A stretch of DNA of 64,000 bases from Blepharisma stoltei ATCC 30299 (Eukaryota > Protista > Ciliophora), in NCBI GenBank assembly GCA_965603825.1, contig CBFDEM010000002.1, forward strand, positions 186,001-250,000. The letters are read 5' to 3'. The translations under genes were made by a program, and so were the position numbers. Position 1 is the first letter of the stretch. Each line of letters opens with the position of its first letter. Of the stretch, positions 2,557-12,655 are shown one piece after another. The notes beneath the pieces are model-generated. The model was given only the letters and a program-made list of their open reading frames with translations. It ran no database searches and had not been told where the DNA came from.

Positions 2557-5500
2557 ATGAAAAGTCTTATAAGCTTTCTCGCTTTAATATGACTTGCCTT
2601 AGCAGATCCTACAATGACTACGAAAAATGGATATTTAGATCCTGGCAGAATTGTGTGGTGGCAAGATAAGTGGGCTCCTAATCCAATTGAGCTCACCCAA
2701 ACTAACGCTGGGGCTACTTCAGTCAGTGTGGTTCTTCATTTTAGACCTTTTACCTCTATAAATTCTGACAGCAACTCTGGAATTGTACAATTGATTGTTC
2801 CTTCAGCTTTCTCAAGTACAGGAACATATTCTTCAGACCCAATGACAATCACAGGAGGCACTGATATGACTGCGACATTTGAATTAGACACCTCCTTACC
2901 TTCTGCAGGAGTTTATGGGCCTTTTCAAGTGCTTACTAGATCTTCATCAACTGGGCAAATTTACGACACAAACTACGTATTCGGTTGTGTCGCAGTTTCT
3001 GCCTCAGTCACAAGTTCTTCTTCTCTGGCAACCGGCGCTGCTACATTAACTTCAACGACTGGTTTTGTTGGCTCAAAAGATGCATTGACCTTTACTTTTA
3101 GTATTCCTTCTGGCACCAATCTGTGAAAGCATGATATTTTTGAAATCATTCCTGACTCCAGTTGGACTGTGACTACAAGCCCTACCTGTGCATCAGTTGA
3201 TATAACTTCAGTCACCAACTATATCAAAGGTCCTGACAATGATAATACTTTACCTTGTGCTATTGCAGCAACTGGAGGGGCAAATGGAGGATTTAGCACT
3301 GCAGCCTCTACAGCTAGCCCTGCTAAAAATAGTATTTATATATATGGACTGTCTCAAGATGTGATTATTACTTCAAGCTACCAGATTAAGCTCCAAGTTT
3401 CCTCCTTTACTTTCCCATCTTCTGCTATTGCATCAGCAAGCTATTCCTGGACACTAAAAATATGGAGATGGGGGACCACTAATTTACTTGCCCAATATAC
3501 AGGCTCTGGACCATTTAAACCAGCTACAGGTGCAATTACAGTGACTTCATGGGCTCCTTACAATTCCAATCTAGCTTCTACAGATATCCCAAGCTCTAAT
3601 TCTTTTAATATTTTCACCAAGCTGACTTTTCAAATCGCCCATCCAATTTCATCAGGCACTATTGCTATCACCTTTACTGGTGCTGATATATATAGTCAAA
3701 ACTGGTATGAAGACATTGGATCTGGTACTGGACAGCCAGCATTATGCTACTTGAATACTTATGTATCAGGAGTCAGTTGCAGTGTATCAACTACTTCTTC
3801 AGTTGCTACTATTACTATAAGCGATACGACCCTAGCAGCTTCTACATCTATTTCAATCACTCTTTTGACTCAACTTACTTCTAGCGCTAAAGTTAGCACA
3901 ATAATAAGCAATGATGGGACTGCAAACATAGATACATTGGCCTCTGCATATTCATGGTCTTTCAGCTCTGCCTCTTCTTATGCATCCATGACTGGTTTCA
4001 AATTTTATGCGACCAATGTAGCCCAGTATGGTGGGACTACAACAGTCAGCACAAATCTGCAAGTAGGAGGTAAACTTGTTAATTCTCAATATTTATTATG
4101 GTATGTAGTGCCATCAACAGCATGGACAACTGGAGCTACTTTAAAAGTTTATTTACCTTTCTCAACTGCAGGAGTACAATTAGCTCAAACCTATATTAAA
4201 TCGTCAGCAACATACAAAGATGCAGCATTTACTTCTAGCACTAGTGATACAACTCTTTCTTCGACAGCAACTGGCACTGCATCACTTAGTTCTGGATCTC
4301 CAGGAACAATTACAATTACTTTTTCAGGAGCAACTATCCCAGCAGCAGGAGGCACCTATCCATACTTTGCCTTTGCATATGGAGATTCCGCAGATAGTAC
4401 AACTGCCTTACCATTTGTCAACTCAAATGCTGGTACTTTTTATGAGTGCTGGGCAAAAGTGTTTACATCAAGCACCTCATCAACTGCATTTGAAATCTCC
4501 AATTATGTTTTCTCCGTTTATACCTCACAAACAGATAGTGCATTAACAGCTGTTCCAATGTGCACAGACAAATTTGCAGGAATTCCTATTATTGTTAACT
4601 ATCATGCTTTAGATAGAGACTTTACGTTTGTGGACTCCACGTATCATTACTATCTTGACGTTGAATTTACTGGAGGGGTTGGTACTAATTTAGGCTCTGG
4701 CTTAAGTGATAACAGTGCTTTTCCTGTAACTACTACATCTTCTTCAATTACTCCAACAGCCACAATCAAATCAAACAAAGTGACTATATCAGGATTAGGA
4801 ACTGTCAGCAGCGATGGTAATGTTGTTCTATTATTGCCAAATGGCGAACCAACTGGAACTATAGCTGTTACTTTGAAATTTTATTATGTCCTTATTGGAG
4901 GAGACCCTACTATAAAATATTACTTATACTCTGGATCATCTTCAACTAATTTAAACAGTGGAGCTGCTGCTGGCTACGGCAGTTCATCAGTAACAAGCCC
5001 TACATCTTACACTGTAGGAGGCAGTGCAGATACTACAACTGGGTCTGTCACTGTTAGCACTGCAGCTTCAGCTGCATCAGGAGATTGGGTTGGAGTTGGC
5101 TTACCTAAAGGCTTTACATTGTCATCATCTGGCTACGGAGTTTCATTAGGCGGTATTTCTTCAACAGCTTATACTGTCTCTTCTTCAAGCAGTACATTTA
5201 CTGGAGGATTTATAGTAGGAAAGTTAGCAAGCGCAGTTGCTCTTTCAGATTCTTCAGCATCAACTTTTACTATTTCAAATTTGGTTCCTCCAACAACTAC
5301 AGGGAAGTCCTCAGATGAAGCTTCGGTCAGTTTCGTTGTTTTTGCAGCATCAGCATCATCAACTACAACGTGCAAAGCTGCAGGCTCTGTATCTTCTGCA
5401 TCTGTAACGCTTAATGCTGGCACAATTACATCAGACACATGCTCAATTGACAAAGCTTACGCTCAAGGCCCAGATTCGGTAGATTCCACCCTGACTCTTT

Positions 5501-8500
5501 CATTTGTGACTGTTAACACTATTCCTGGTGGTGGAAAAATTTCGTTGACTCTAAACTCTGGAGCTTGGACTATTAGTACTTCAGATGTAGAAACTACTTG
5601 TGAGGGTGTTGGCTTTACAGACTATTCTGACCTTACTGCTAAAAGCTGTACGATTTCAAGTTCAGTTATTACTTTAGAAGGATTTGCTTCAATTTCTGCA
5701 GGAACTGTTAATGTAAAAGTTTATCATATAATTCCTGCTTCAGCGTCGACTGAGACATTAACTTGTTTTTCATCAGTCAGTACTTATGATTCAAATGGTT
5801 ATCTCATTGATATAATTGGCTCATCAATAGCAAACTCAGTTACTTTGACTGTTTCAACAGATACTGGGAGCACAAATAGTGGACTAGTAGCAAAAGCATA
5901 TCCTAACGTAGCTAATACAATTGCAGACATTTATCTCAGTTTTTCTTTTTCTAAAGCAATCCCTGCTTATAGTACAATACAAATTAATCCTGGCTTTGTC
6001 AGTTCTTGGACTGTGTCCTCTTCTAATATCCAGAATTCGTGCTGGACTGACCAATATACTTATTCTTGCACTGTGTCTGGCAGTTATGTATCCTTAACAC
6101 TAGCAAATTCAGTTGCTGCCAGCCAAGCCATCCAAGTTTACATTGAGAGTGCTTTGACTTTACCTAGTTCTAATTCTACATCAAGCGGATGGACAATTTC
6201 TACCTCATGGAATGGAGTGTCCATCACTGCTGACTCTACAACAGTCACTACTGCAACTTTCCCATTCGTTGTTGGTACTGCTGTTGAAAATGCTATCACC
6301 TTAGCATCTATTACCCAAGTTAATACGACGACTGCAGGCGAAATTTCTTCATATGCTTTTAGCTTTTCTTCAGCCTCAGCAGTAGCTACTACTGATTCAT
6401 TCGTTATACAGTTTCCGAAAGAATTTGATCCACATGTAGGCGATGCTAAATTGGTGTTTAATGACTGCTTGCCTAATAATTTTTACCTAACATGTGGGTC
6501 AACTGCTCTGGGGATTACTAGCGGAACTCTTTGCTCTGTTGACCATTGGAAAGTTGTGATAACAGGAATTACTAAGACAGTAACTGCAGCCTCAAGTATA
6601 GATATTACAATCGATATGGTTCAAAACCCAGTATCAGTATCTGGAACATTCAGCTTTTACCAATATGGATCAGACGGGTCTGTAAAATCATACCTACAAC
6701 AAAGTGGTACTGTTTCAACTACAAGCAATGTAGCAAACATCGTATCACTTAAAAACGTTACTATTGATTCCACAGAACTTTCAGAAACAGCAACCTATAC
6801 CTTTAACTTCTACGCTGCAGCTACATACACCCCAGACTATATCATTTCAATATTATTCCCTCAACAATTCAATAACAAGCTAAAAATGGGCAGCTCAGCT
6901 ACATGTAAATCTGTTTACTATGATGAGTCTTCCTCATCTACAAGCACAACTACCAGCACGACTTTCAGCTCTACATCAACTTGTACTATTAATGGAAATA
7001 ACGTCACCCTTTCATTCCCATCAGGAACAAGCCTAACAACGGCATCTACCTCAAGAATCGAAATTCAACTGTCCTCTTTCTATAACCCAGAATGGGGATT
7101 CACAAGGTCTGCTGGATGGGATGTGACTGACTATGAAACTTTTACTGGAACTATTGAGCCTGACGAGTGGAGCAATAAATTCGATATTGCCATCTCCCAA
7201 TTCAGCACAGGCAAAACTTATGCTAAAAGCTATGGTGTCCTTCACTCAGGATTTATTGGATATACATTAAGTACAACTAGTATCAGTGTTGGCTCTTATG
7301 ATGCAACCAATGCTTCTGGAGGTATAAAATTGCTGCCTGGACAGCAAAGTTCTGATATCACTGTTTCTCTTCTTGATAGCAATAGTTGGCCATTGAAATC
7401 GAAATCACTTAAACTGTCTCCAACTTCAAATACTAATTACCCTGACAATGGAGCCCTTGCATATTCCTCACTTCATTACAGTTACACTGCATTCCAAATG
7501 ACTTCTCAAATCAAATTCAGAGTGGCAGCCACCAGCAGTGCAGTATCTGGGATTTATTATATTGATTGGGGAACACCTGTTGAGTCCTTACAAGATGGAG
7601 TTTCAACAGCTTTATATAGTGCTCCATTGAGTATACTAGTAGAAGTTTGCAGTTCTTTAACAGCTATATCTATCACAGTCGATTCTTTACCAACCTTCTA
7701 TCAATACTACACCAGTCTTCCAATCAAAGTGACTCTTGCAAACTCTCCAGCTACTCAGTTGATCGTTACTCCAGCATTCTCTGTCACAGGATTTACAATC
7801 ACCCCTACTTCTCTTACATTTACACCTAATGTGAATGAGCTTTACTTCCAAGTTGTCGTCGGGTCAACTTATGTAGCCTCCACAACTTCTCCTACACTAT
7901 CATTTACCCTTTCAGGGACAGACTCAGCTGCTTTTACAGCCCCAAGTAAGTTGACAGCTACAGTTTCCACGTCATATCCTTCAGTTGTTTCAGTCACTCC
8001 AGGATTGACTGGGACTAAAGTGAGCGGATCAGAGTACAAAATTGCAGTTACTACATCAATAGCTGGAGTTTTGTACTGGGGGCTTGGGTGCCAGGGCTCT
8101 GAAGTCCTTACTTTTGCTGGACTTTCAGCCTTGGTTTCAGATCTGGTTAGCCCATCAAGCTCTATTCAAACTCTTCAAGACCAATTGGATAGTGAATATC
8201 TGAGCACTGAAACTGATATTAGCAGCACTAAAGGGGATACTGATATTGCTTCTTTCTTCAAAAGAATTCATGCTGAGCACTGTGAGAACTATTGGGCGTC
8301 ATCTCAAGTTATAACGACTTCAGGTGCTACCTTTGACTTTAATTGGCTTATGGCAGGGACCAGCTACACTTTTACAGCTTATATTGCTACAAGGCTAACA
8401 AATGATACTACAGTTTACCCTATCAAGACTTATAACTTTACCACAGACTCTCTTGGTTCTATCTATACCACCTCAGTCACTTTTTCAGGTACCGTTTCAA

Positions 8501-9222
8501 CTAGCTCTAGCAATATTGCTAAAGTTTTAGCTAAGAACATGGGTGTAAATCCATCATGGTTATCATATGTAAGTTCATCAAGAAGAAGACTAGACGACAC
8601 TACTACAACTACGACGTATACTTATAATGTTCTTGCTGACAGCAGATATCCAGCTTATACTTCTTCAGCTATAATATCAAATCTTAATACCAACCAAGCT
8701 CAGGCAACTGCTGACTTCCTCAGTACATACTCATTGACTGCTTCAAGTTTAGGGACATCTGCAGCTGTTTCTACTGGAACAACCCCATCATGGTCAACTG
8801 CCCCTGCAAAATCTGCAGTCACTGCAACCTCGGCTACCTTTACTGCAGCTTCTTCACAGGCAGGAACCATATATGTGTCATGCTCAGATAATGATTTAAC
8901 AAGCCGCATTACTTATGCTTGGCAAGTTGTGGATGGGCTAGATGCTACTTCTTCATCAGTGCCTTCGTCAAGTGTAACGAGCGTTGCTGCGACTAGTGAA
9001 ACTCTGACTGTAGCTGGATTGACTGCAGGGACGACTTATGCTTGCTACTTTACTGCTTGCAATAGTTATCCACTGAATCCTCTTTGTATTGATTATGTAT
9101 CAAGCACTTCTACAGCTTTAGCAAGCGTTACAATTACAACTACAGCTACAAGCGACTCTAGCAATGCAGCTCTTATTGAAGCAAGCACGGTGTTGGCGTT
9201 CCTCTTAATTTTAGTTAACTAA
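2557..9222 (+). CDS. Giant Ser/Thr-rich secreted, probably GPI-anchored surface protein (2221 aa)
   Basis: ATG 2557 with signal peptide MKSLISFLALIWLALA; TGA=Trp at 2590 and 3124 joins ORFs 2614 and 3169; beta-rich repeats, SSRRRLDD motif, FN3-like GLTAGTTY segment, hydrophobic C-terminal tail after SDSSN. Confidence 0.9.
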
Positions 9223-10072
9223 AAAAACATTGCTTAAATGTATCGTTCTTAATCCATAAAATAAGATTTAATAATATAACAGTCTTTAGGCAGCTAAAGG
9301 TATTTAAAACTTTTCTGCATGAATTCATCGTAAATTGATTAAAAATAGCATTGTATGTAAATTATGAAGATCTGTACTAAATAGGCAGATTATTTTTTAA
9401 AATAATAAAAATATTTGTTCTAGTTTCTGAAATAAATGGCAAAGAGTGTTTAATTTGGGGTAAACTCAATTTTATTATCAAGCTCGGATTTTTTCATAAT
9501 TTTGATCAAACCCTGAAGAACTAAAATGCTTCTACAAGAATGAAGCCCATTACAAAAAGGGGACAGAATTTGATGCTTTACTTATATTAAGCTGTTTCTC
9601 ATAGCAGCTATAATCATAAGCTGGAGACTGGTTGCAACAATTTGGCATAAATATAGCCTTTTTTCAGAATTCAAGTATGATAAACTATTAAGAGATTCTG
9701 ACTAAGGTGTTTCCTGAGTAAAATTAATTATAAGTCATATAAGTGAAATTTGGTAATCAAAGATTAGCTTTTTCAACTTCAAGCATAATAAATATCCCAA
9801 GTTATGCTAAGGCCAAGGATAAAGAGTCTTAACATGATTTCTTCTTCCGATTTAACTGCAGCAATATAAAATATGCTAAAAATATAATTCGAAATCCTAT
9901 AATTATCCTCAGATATGATTCATTCATGTTGGGACATAATTAAATTTTTTATTGTGTTAAGAGCAGTAAGTAAAACAGAAGGAGTTTTCTTAAATTTTAT
10001 TTTAAGGCCTTATGTGATACTTTATATCTTTAGTTTAATTATGAGTAAATAAATTCAGACTTAATATGATTT

Positions 10073-10948
10073 TTAATTAAGGTCTTCTTTTTGAACGTCT
10101 TTACATAAGAATCTCCACGGCAACTCTTTTGCTTGAGATATTCCAATTCTTGGAGTAGTTTGCAGGTCAATTGGCCTATATCCTTCATCATAAATCTTTA
10201 TAGGACAGTCATTATCCAAAACAGACTTTCCGTAATATGCCATCGGTATCCTCATGCTTTTCACAAGTTTTGCTGGTCCATTCAGCATTTTTTTCTTATT
10301 TTTAACTCCTTCTCCTCCTAGCAAAAGACCATCTCCTCTCAAAGGTAAGCACCCTCTTATAAGAACAGCACAGCCTCTCCCAGCGTACTCAGTTTTAAAA
10401 TTAATGCATATATTTTGGCCATACACATAATATAAATAAATAGTGCCAGGCTCAGCAAACATAGCTTTATTTCTTTCTGATTTCCCTTTGAACGCATGAC
10501 AAGATGCTTCGTCTTGGGTATAGGCTTCTGCTTCATTTATGATTGTTGCAATGGTACCATGCTCAGAAGTATGCTCCATGACTTTTCCTATAAGCTCTCT
10601 GGCTACTGTTACAGTATCTTGCTGATAAAAGGACAGCGGCAATTCAGTTTTAAGGCCGCTTGATTGTGCAGGCTCTTCTCTGAGGATTGGAATGGAATTT
10701 TCAGTTGTTGAAGGGTCGTTTGAGGATGCAGCTCTTGCTTGCCATTCTGCTCTTTGTGACTCATCTAGCTGTTTCCATTCATTTCCGATTTTTTTGGCGA
10801 TTTCTGAGGAGCTAAGATTAGAAGATGTGGAACGGTATGTGTCTTTTCTGGCTTGAGCGAAAAGCATATAAGCAGATAAAGGTCTTTTGTTCGCTGCTTT
10901 TGGCGGTTGTTGATTTTTTAATGCTTTTTTCGCAACTTTTTTGACCAT
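10073..10948 (-). CDS. MPG: HMG-box / 3-methyladenine DNA glycosylase (MPG/AAG family) fusion
   Basis: N-terminal HMG box (KRPLSAYMLF...EIAKKIGNEWKQL); C-terminal MPG motifs FY...VARELIGK, EAEAY, YYVYG, AVLIR, NGPAKL, RIGIS, PWRF. Confidence 0.92.
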   Translation of the reverse strand: MVKKVAKKALKNQQPPKAANKRPLSAYMLFAQARKDTYRSTSSNLSSSEIAKKIGNEWKQLDESQRAEWQARAASSNDPSTTENSIPILREEPAQSSGLKTELPLSFYQQDTVTVARELIGKVMEHTSEHGTIATIINEAEAYTQDEASCHAFKGKSERNKAMFAEPGTIYLYYVYGQNICINFKTEYAGRGCAVLIRGCLPLRGDGLLLGGEGVKNKKKMLNGPAKLVKSMRIPMAYYGKSVLDNDCPIKIYDEGYRPIDLQTTPRIGISQAKELPWRFLCKDVQKEDLN

Positions 10949-11048
10949 TTTATTAAATCACTATAGCATTTTGCAATTCATTATAAAATTTACAATATAG
11001 ATTCACATAAGCATAAAAGTAGAAATTTATTATAAAAATAAAATTTGC

Positions 11049-12014
11049 ATGGCATCCAAATTGCCTGAATGTCCTGTATGCTTGGAGGAATATTCGCGAA
11101 CACAAATGCCAATGCTTCTTCCTTGTGGGCATGCGTTGTGCAAGCTCTGCTTCGACATATCAACCAAAAGGAACACAGTTGAATGTCCCCAAGATAGAAA
11201 AAAATCCAATGTAAAGAATTTATCCCCTGCATACGATTTGATGTCGACTATTGAGCAGCTCCAAGAGCTTAAGCTTCAAATAAATCAGGAATCCAGCGTT
11301 AAAGAGGAAACGCAAACACAATGCAATTCTAAGATAGATGTATTGGAAAAACAATTTAGAGAAAAGTTGACAGAATATGAAAGAACCTACCAAGAAAGGG
11401 CTGAAAAAATGATAGAAGAAGTCAAAAGAGAAGAGGAAGAAAAAAGGATCAGATATGTCGAACAAATGAATGAAATTAGCAAGGTGAACACTGAAAAGCA
11501 TCTCAAAAAACTTAGCCAAAAAATTAGACAAGGGAAAATACGAATAAATGGATCTGAGAACCCCAACATCAATCGAGAAAGGCAAAATCCAAGGGATGAT
11601 AACAGAATTTACTGGTCTTGGCAATCGTCAGACCATAAATGGAACGAATATGATCATAGCATTTCTTCAAAAATAGAGTCAGCATATAGGTCTGGTGTAT
11701 CATATGCAGTAGTAAAGGCAAATAATCGATCTATAAAAATCGATTTTGATCAATGAAGAGAAACCAGTGGATCAAAAATAAAACGAATAAATACTATAAC
11801 AAGTGCTCCTCTATGGAAATTTTTAAAAAGCCCCAAAAAATGGGTAGCATTACTTGACTCTGAATGCTTTAAACTTGATGTAGCATGAATTAACAATGAA
11901 AATCATGTTAGCATCAACATAGACGATGAAAAAAATGCAGTTTGTAATTTTGATGAAATGTCTTTGAGAATTCAAGACAAAAAATTTCCCCTTGTAAGAG
12001 AGATACTTTCTTAA
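11049..12014 (+). CDS. RING-HC + coiled coil + tandem WWE-domain E3 ubiquitin ligase-like protein
   Basis: CPVC...LPCGHALCKLC...CPQD RING; WSWQSSDHKWNEYD...IESAY WWE; read-through of TGA at 11754 gives a second WWE-like unit (WKFLKSPKKW...LDVAW...NFDEM) ending TAA 12012-12014. Confidence 0.85.
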
Positions 12015-12655
12015 AATTTTTGTTTCCATTTGCAGAAGGAGTTAATATAATTGTATTCCTTTTTAAAATTAGGTATTTTTGCAAATTTGTGAAATATCCC
12101 ATATTAAACGGGCTATAAAAGCCATTTAAAAATAAAATAGCATTTCACCTATAAAAGAAAAATATTGTTTCAATTTAAAGTTGATTAATTTATCAAAAAT
12201 AAAACATTAACAGATAATTTCGTAAAATACGGGAGCTAATAAGGAATTTTGTGCATTAAATCTAAAGAAAAACTGATTTAATCTTATAGCAAGATTAGCA
12301 GCCGATAAAGAAAATAAAGAAAAAGCATTTTTTAAGCAAGCACTTCATAAACAGTAAGTTAGTATAGTTCAAAGATGCTAAAAACCTTATGAGACAAGAT
12401 CTCTAAGGCTATTCAAGTAAAATTAAATATTAATTAAATAGATTTGGCTTTAAAATGGTTATCAAATGACCCAAACCCATTATATTTCAGAAAACTTAGC
12501 TATAGATTCTGAGATGTGCTTCCATAAATAAAATAACATCTGTTAAAAATACGTATTCATTATCAAGTATGATTTCTAATCATTTTGCATTCATTCATTG
12601 ATAAACTCCCTTTCAAAATTTATTTTAAATAAAACCGATTTTCTATTAATAAAAG

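Follow-up and report, generated by a model that had tools for sequence, protein, structure and literature searches.

The DNA considered here is a 64,000-nucleotide stretch of the genome of the ciliate Blepharisma stoltei ATCC 30299 (GenBank assembly GCA_965603825.1, contig CBFDEM010000002.1, positions 186,001 to 250,000 of the forward strand), hereafter called the window. On its minus strand, at 10073-10948, the window carries a gene that encodes an HMG box and a DNA glycosylase of the AAG/MPG family within one polypeptide. This architecture is rare, lineage-restricted and uncharacterised, and it is found in two species, B. stoltei and the source of a public assembly contig, L001. Taken as a whole, we consider it fairly probable that the gene specifies an expressed AAG/MPG glycosylase whose NHP6/HMGB-type N-terminal module acts as a chromatin tether. 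The features of the locus are as follows, in window coordinates.

10073-10948, minus strand: complete coding sequence of the HMG-MPG fusion (291 residues plus TAA), from the list of open reading frames, the sequence, the upstream TAA TAA and joint-free contigs of four runs
10889-10948, minus strand: Lys-rich N-terminal arm, residues 1-20, from alignment with the host HMGBs, L001 and NHP6A
10724-10888, minus strand: HMG box, residues 21-75, from Pfam PF00505, AlphaFold2, Foldseek and PDB alignments
10649-10723, minus strand: flexible Ser/Thr/Pro/Glu-rich linker, residues 76-100, from AlphaFold2 confidence (42-61) and 24% identity to L001
10076-10648, minus strand: MPG/AAG (Pur_DNA_glyco) catalytic domain, residues 101-291, from Pfam, TIGR00567, AlphaFold2 and Foldseek
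10526-10528, minus strand: codon of Glu141 (EAEAY), equivalent to the general base Glu125 of human AAG, from the phmmer alignment to 7xfh/1f4r/1bnk, codon read from the sequence
10421-10423, minus strand: codon of Tyr176 (YYVYG), equivalent to the intercalating Tyr162 of human AAG, from the alignment, codon read from the sequence
10054-10946, minus strand: extent of the assembled transcript-like contigs, with the 5' end 0-2 nt from the ATG, from public-run contigs aligned to the window
10949-11048, no strand: 100-bp AT-rich intergenic spacer, presumed bidirectional promoter, from the sequence; uncovered by contigs

A Single Intron-Less Gene

The window is B. stoltei macronuclear DNA, in which UGA is read as tryptophan. 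The macronuclear genome of strain ATCC 30299 spans 41 Mbp and is gene-dense, with tiny introns, short untranslated regions and UGA as a tryptophan codon (PMC9942806); the assembly that holds the window amounts to 41.46 Mb in 64 contigs. On the minus strand, 10073-10948 is a single uninterrupted open reading frame (ORF) of 291 codons closed by a TAA stop, with no intron, and an in-frame TAA TAA lies immediately 5' of its ATG. Its three tryptophan codons are all TGG, and it contains no TGA. The preliminary description of this DNA, made from its letters and ORFs, had proposed one gene joining an HMG box to an MPG domain with an intact-looking catalytic site; Pfam, alignments and the single ORF bear this out. 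An AlphaFold2 model of the 291-residue protein, made with a 35-row alignment, has a mean predicted local distance difference test score (pLDDT) of 87.6 and consists of two well-folded domains with a disordered linker between them.

The stretch is present in four public sequencing runs of one study, whose classification as RNA is a guess. Their contigs were examined over 9500-12300. Each run yields one contig for the gene, which extends from 10054 to 10930-10946 with no joints and no differences, and a separate contig for the neighbouring RING/WWE gene (11044-12099), the latter likewise beginning only 3-5 nt ahead of its ATG. The intergenic intervals 9706-10053, 10947-11043 and 12100-12300 are bare of contigs in all four runs. 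At 10054, 19 nt past the stop codon, a poly(A)-like loose end is seen in one contig. Such gene-limited coverage is a transcriptome-like pattern, and it puts both domains on a single molecule without splicing. Thus, at the level of contigs, and with the runs guessed as RNA, the HMG-MPG gene is expressed and intron-less. Introns in the window, or two separate genes, are ruled out by the joint-free contigs together with the continuous ORF. The preliminary description had named transcripts starting downstream of the HMG box as an outcome that would speak against a fusion. The contigs do not begin there, their 5' ends being at 10930-10946, the start sites themselves being invisible to contigs.

A Complete AAG/MPG Catalytic Domain

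The protein is a member of the AAG/MPG family by profile, by fold and by residues. The PF02245 profile (Pur_DNA_glyco) matches residues 106-284 with an E-value of 1.3e-47 and 162 bits (cut-off 27), over positions 1-179 of 181, and the score for the NCBIfam model TIGR00567, 134 bits, exceeds its cut-off of 116.35. In the AlphaFold2 model, the glycosylase domain (residues 101-290) has a pLDDT of ~97. Foldseek superposes this C-terminal domain on human AAG-DNA complexes (1bnk, 1f4r) with an E-value of ~1e-16, a template-modelling (TM) score of 0.80 and a root-mean-square deviation (rmsd) of 2.1-2.5 Å.

The phmmer alignment with human AAG makes E141, Y143, H151, Y173, Y176, N183 and R198 the equivalents of E125, Y127, H136, Y159, Y162, N169 and R182, respectively. 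The roles of these seven human residues are established by structural work on AAG. All seven active-site and base-flipping equivalents are invariant across a 13-sequence alignment. The domain is complete, as first described: its EAEAY (E141, Y143) and YYVYG (Y176) motifs both match the human residues E125, Y127 and Y162. From these features, the enzyme is predicted to be a monofunctional base-excision glycosylase of the AAG/MPG family, with 3-methyladenine, 7-methylguanine, hypoxanthine and ethenoadenine as expected substrates.

Human AAG/MPG (1BNK, 1F4R, 1EWN and the nucleosome complex 7XFH) therefore shares with the ciliate protein the fold, the catalytic Glu, Tyr and His, the intercalating Tyr, the Asn and the Arg. 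In both proteins, an N-terminal extension precedes the catalytic domain. The ~80 N-terminal residues of human AAG are disordered and hold no folded domain, whereas the Blepharisma extension is a folded HMG box with a basic arm. Identity between the two proteins is only ~27-35%, and the ciliate MPG domain is more compact and scores higher with bacterial-type models (NF002003, TIGR00567).

An NHP6/HMGB-Type Module with a Shortened Third Helix

The N-terminal part of the protein opens with the Lys-rich segment that had been noticed at the outset, with eight Lys or Arg among residues 1-20 and no Asp or Glu within the first 25. This arm probably serves as a nuclear-localisation signal, like that of NHP6A and of the host HMGBs. 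The PF00505 profile (HMG_box) then matches residues 21-74 with an E-value of 4.2e-14 and 53.2 bits (cut-off 25.4), over positions 2-55 of 69. In the AlphaFold2 model, three helices (residues 26-41, 47-60 and 63-75; pLDDT 79-95) form the L-shaped fold, with helix 3 about half its usual length, which shortens the long arm of the L. Foldseek superposes 54 residues of the N-terminal domain on many solved HMG boxes with an rmsd of 1.1-1.7 Å. An HMG box is thus clearly present by Pfam and by the model, its match and that of the MPG domain being well outside what chance would give; it is not quite the full box first announced. The linker that follows is also present, but is ~25 residues long (76-100) rather than the roughly 30 first estimated, and is disordered, with pLDDT 42-61 and no secondary structure.

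Among solved structures, the best relatives of the fused box in PDB alignments are yeast NHP6A and box B of HMGB1, and the NHP6A alignment spans residues 7-77 of the HMG-MPG protein. Two residues of NHP6A, Met29 and Phe48, are known from work on NHP6A and HMG-D as wedges that intercalate into DNA. Met28 of the fused protein occupies the Met29 position and Ser47 the Phe48 position; L001 has Phe at both.

B. stoltei also has NHP6/HMGB-like proteins of its own (L007, L008 and L009), of ~110 residues, in each of which one HMG box stands between a basic arm and an acidic tail. The fused module is colinear with them from Met1, at 30-38% identity, and stops in the middle of helix 3, where the linker and the enzyme replace the remainder of that helix and the acidic tail. 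The module hence resembles NHP6A and the host HMGBs in having one non-sequence-specific HMG box after a basic arm, with the Met wedge kept. It differs from them in lacking the last third of helix 3 and in having Ser at the second wedge (Phe48), and from the host proteins also in lacking their acidic tail. Taken together, these comparisons point to an NHP6/HMGB-type module that would bind, and may bend, DNA without sequence specificity.

A Fusion Found in Two Species

A search of 5.8 billion proteins returned, besides the query, only single-domain MPGs as they had been called; the second fusion was seen after re-reading the DNA of the closest match. This match, P0002 (79% identity), lies on the Logan contig L001, where the gene caller had divided 5800-6681 into a 59-residue HMG-box ORF and, 21 bp further downstream, a 226-residue MPG ORF. 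The DNA of L001 is in one frame throughout, its sole interruption being a TGA at the Trp that is conserved in the window protein and in all HMG boxes. A lone TGA at this very position indicates that L001 comes from another heterotrich with UGA as Trp, whose gene is the same HMG-MPG fusion. Its apparent split into two genes is therefore a reassigned codon. Pfam finds the HMG box at a significant level in both proteins, and both begin with MVK. The window and L001 share no synteny, their HMG parts cannot be aligned as DNA, and the acid-phosphatase gene that flanks the L001 fusion is at best ~50% identical to any B. stoltei copy; the organism behind L001 is thus clearly distinct.

The window protein itself is already present, without a name, in public protein databases. 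The closest named match is SteCoe_35662 of Stentor coeruleus (201 residues, 64% identity). HMMER, run exhaustively over 1.84 billion cluster representatives, placed no other HMG+MPG protein among the best 150, a range that would include any two-domain protein with an MPG domain closer than that of human AAG. No further case emerged from searching with a profile of the three fusion proteins, from the ESM Atlas or from a JGI metagenome scan, and the full-text literature reports no HMG-box-MPG protein, natural or engineered. The preliminary description had reported not knowing this architecture from characterised proteins; it is indeed absent among characterised or widespread proteins in the protein, structure-atlas, metagenome and literature searches.

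Stentor and ~25 other orthologues in a ciliate context are single-domain. In Stentor and seven other ciliate-type contigs, neither tblastn searches (code 4) of the fetched loci with the HMG regions nor in-frame translation revealed an HMG-box coding sequence upstream of the MPG gene. In L011, an in-frame upstream ORF was considered as a hidden HMG part; it is separated by a TAG and a TAA and shows no HMG similarity, and was treated as a separate gene. SteCoe_35662 and the other single-domain heterotrich MPGs (P0003-P0025) have catalytic domains orthologous to that of the window protein (60-69% identity) and form its sister clade; they differ in having no HMG box and in starting with a basic peptide of ~10 residues.

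In L001, gene calling with the standard code hid the fusion at the reassigned TGA. Domain architectures of ciliates that read UGA as Trp are thus systematically hidden in metagenome and Logan protein catalogues.

Origin of the Fusion

The relationships of the MPG domain were examined in a maximum-likelihood (ML) tree of 50 rows (LG+C20), with which a quick tree of 108 rows agrees; the trees are unrooted and include no named animal, plant or other alveolate MPG. The window protein and L001 form a pair (support 100/98) that is sister to an 11-row single-domain group including Stentor, with 100/99 for the joint clade, and all of these fall within a clade of ~31 rows supported at 99/96. The contigs inspected from this larger clade are all eukaryotic, with ciliate-type genes (protein kinases, Sina RING, granulin, CDC50, myosin TH1). 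The sister position of the single-domain Stentor group implies that the fusion postdates the split from the Stentor lineage. On the tree, the fusion is thus best read as having arisen within a gene that had long been resident in ciliates.

This placement bears on a scenario that the preliminary description put forward as possible, in which a compact MPG domain came from bacteria by horizontal transfer and a host chromatin domain was joined to it afterwards. The nearest sequences beyond the ciliate clade are indeed of bacterial length (~180-200 residues), and those with names are bacterial (Marinamargulisbacteria, Rickettsiales), with 40-48% identity and ~130 bits; human AAG gives 62 bits and ~27% identity in structural alignment. 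Outside the clade of ~31 rows, the tree is poorly resolved and the few named sequences are bacterial. However, the support of that clade and the eukaryotic nature of all its inspected contigs mean that any transfer predates the diversification of these ciliates, and the fusion is a separate, later event. Transfer followed by fusion is thus rather unlikely and is not supported in the form proposed: a transfer, if there was one, would be ancient and unrelated in time to the fusion.

What the HMG Box May Do

Comparison of the window protein with L001 gives a first indication of what has been maintained. Their identity is 25% in the basic arm, 40% in the HMG box, 24% in the linker and 78% in the MPG domain. 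The proportions of nonsynonymous (pN) and synonymous (pS) differences are 0.40 and 0.73 in the HMG box, and 0.13 and 0.77 in the MPG domain; synonymous sites are saturated (pS 0.73-0.77), so that only raw proportions, and not dN/dS, can be compared. The arm and the linker show no excess of synonymous change. The HMG box thus appears to be constrained, far less so than the MPG domain.

In the mechanism that we favour, the basic arm and the HMG box would bind DNA in the minor groove and bend it, and would probably double as a nuclear-localisation signal. The module would keep the glycosylase concentrated on chromatin and, as a tether, may aid lesion search and base flipping in packaged DNA. The acidic tail of HMGB proteins damps their DNA binding; loss of this auto-inhibitory element in the fusion would leave the module without its usual damper. 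DNA binding and bending by the HMG box, enzyme activity and a benefit for repair in chromatin are all predictions from the sequence and the structure model. The same logic has been used artificially: HMGB1 box A and other non-specific DNA binders (HMGN1, the H1 globular domain, Sso7d), fused to genome editors, raise their activity in chromatin, thus pairing a DNA-acting enzyme with a chromatin or DNA binder (PMC11101732). These editors, like the MPG-containing adenine transversion base editors, differ from the natural protein in being artificial and Cas-targeted.

Several observations weigh against the chromatin-tether proposal. The HMG box has a truncated helix 3, Ser in place of the Phe48 wedge and only 40% identity to the box of L001, all of which make the strength of its DNA binding uncertain. 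Human AAG was inhibited by high ratios of the HMG-box protein TFAM added in trans (PMC11662936), so that stimulation of the enzyme by an HMG box is not a given; the effect could be neutral or negative. The fusion occurs in only two species, and most relatives use a short basic N-terminus. Finally, the 5' ends of the contigs (10930-10946) lie at or just inside the ATG (10946-10948), and the contigs would equally fit an mRNA whose start coincides with the ATG or lies downstream of it, or one more start within the gene.

The last point is also the starting one for the view that the fusion is an artefact of gene model or expression, with the MPG made alone and the HMG part a decaying remnant of an adjacent HMGB gene. 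Contigs are blind to transcript starts and here barely reach the ATG, and the box is truncated and fast-evolving, as a remnant might be. Yet the frame has stayed open for ~100 codons without TAA or TAG in two divergent species, both with MVK at the start and both with an HMG box significant in Pfam. Moreover, the contigs run uninterrupted through the box, no separate shorter contig exists, and no in-frame Met is available between M28 and M124 for an MPG-only start. We consider this artefact very improbable.

The N-terminal module might instead be mainly an address label that directs the enzyme to a nuclear compartment (macronucleus or micronucleus) or confines it to a stage, leaving catalysis and lesion search unchanged. 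Single-domain orthologues begin, at the same place, with a basic peptide resembling a nuclear-localisation signal (MSKRPREES, MKRxRAES), so that the ancestral N-terminus was probably for import; the near-neutral change of arm and linker and the modest conservation of the box (40%) would also fit. However, the relatives achieve import with a short basic peptide, for which a folded HMG box is unnecessary, and the box of the fusion shows fewer nonsynonymous than synonymous differences and retains its wedge Met. Such a role is unlikely to be the main one; it is compatible with chromatin tethering and does not compete exclusively with it.

It could further be imagined that the box is a damage sensor, which would recognise DNA that is already bent or otherwise distorted, such as crosslinks, bulky adducts, cruciforms or nicked intermediates, and either deliver the glycosylase there or shield its abasic product. 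HMGB-type boxes are known to prefer distorted DNA, and the Foldseek matches include box A of HMG1 on cisplatin-modified DNA and HMG-D on bulged DNA. AAG, on the other hand, acts on small base lesions that do not distort DNA, the box varies and is truncated, and nothing in the sequence separates structure-specific from general binding. A sensor of this kind is a distinctly improbable explanation of the box, while the broader DNA-bending or damage-sensing role suggested in the preliminary description is plausible as a conjecture from its domains.

A Second B. stoltei MPG and Other MPG Fusions

B. stoltei has a second MPG, P0122 (CAG9329775.1), of 258 residues, encoded at ~419342-420118 of contig C48 of genome G000 (L005 1288-2064) with two in-frame TGA codons read as Trp. 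Taken alone, its N-terminus gives a sub-threshold HMG-box match (E ~8e-4), with the helix-1/helix-2 pattern and the Trp kept, and looks HMG-derived but eroded. In its catalytic domain, Ile and Met stand at the positions of AAG His136 and Tyr162, respectively, and the catalytic Glu and Tyr are retained. In the ML tree, the long branch of P0122 falls with P0123 and P0267 (95/91); the approximately unbiased (AU) test does not reject (p 0.10) its monophyly with the window protein and L001, under which P0122 would be a duplicate of the HMG-MPG gene that has diverged.

P0123 is a protein of 300 residues encoded on L003 (1703-2605), an MMETSP transcript contig from a protist with the standard code and ~50% GC. 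Its 94 N-terminal residues are clearly an H2B histone fold, matching solved H2Bs at E 4e-18, with an MPG domain attached to it, and a single-domain MPG, P0014 (L003 1033-1680), lies in tandem with it. Like the window protein, P0123 thus carries an MPG domain of the ciliate clade and an N-terminal chromatin-protein module connected by a short linker. It differs in that the module is an H2B fold and not an HMG box, in belonging to another MPG subclade and in having Asn as its His136 equivalent. A glycosylase with a histone fold could in principle enter nucleosomes.

The HMG fusion, the eroded N-terminus of P0122 and, in another protist, the H2B fusion raise the question of whether heterotrich ciliates repeatedly hard-wired MPG into chromatin. 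We regard this as a tentative idea, possible but on the doubtful side; any tie to the polyploid amitotic macronucleus or to photodynamic pigments is pure speculation.

Fusions also occur among MPGs of the bacterial type, namely UDG-superfamily+MPG (P0205, 386 residues), ThiS-like+MPG (P0231, 296 residues) and a tandem MPG (P0149, 475 residues). The rule that MPG is always single-domain is therefore not strictly true outside the characterised enzymes.

Neighbouring Genes

A gene for a RING and tandem-WWE protein of ~321 residues lies at 11049-12014 on the plus strand, with two TGA codons read as Trp and its own transcript contig. It stands head-to-head with the HMG-MPG gene, 100 bp away. WWE domains are readers of poly(ADP-ribose), and co-regulation of the two genes in a DNA-damage response is conceivable. 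A conserved head-to-head damage-response module was considered and is not supported, the pairing being absent at the L001 orthologue: no RING/WWE gene lies within 6 kb of that fusion.

On the other side, a long ORF on the plus strand (3169-9222, start possibly further upstream) runs convergently with the HMG-MPG gene, towards its 3' end. It encodes more than 2000 residues, Ser/Thr/Ala-rich and repetitive with a hydrophobic C-terminus, and resembles a surface or cortical protein.

Implications

Work on base-excision repair is actively addressing how glycosylases search for damage in packaged DNA, and the nucleosome-AAG complex 7XFH is among the structural matches of the protein described here. 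A natural enzyme in which an architectural DNA-binding domain is covalently attached to a glycosylase bears directly on how such enzymes gain access to these lesions. It also offers a natural precedent for the engineered addition of HMG-type modules to DNA-modifying enzymes and, possibly, compact parts for MPG-based base editors. If heterotrichs did join MPG to chromatin proteins more than once, the fusion would belong to a lineage-specific strategy of chromatin-resident base-excision repair.

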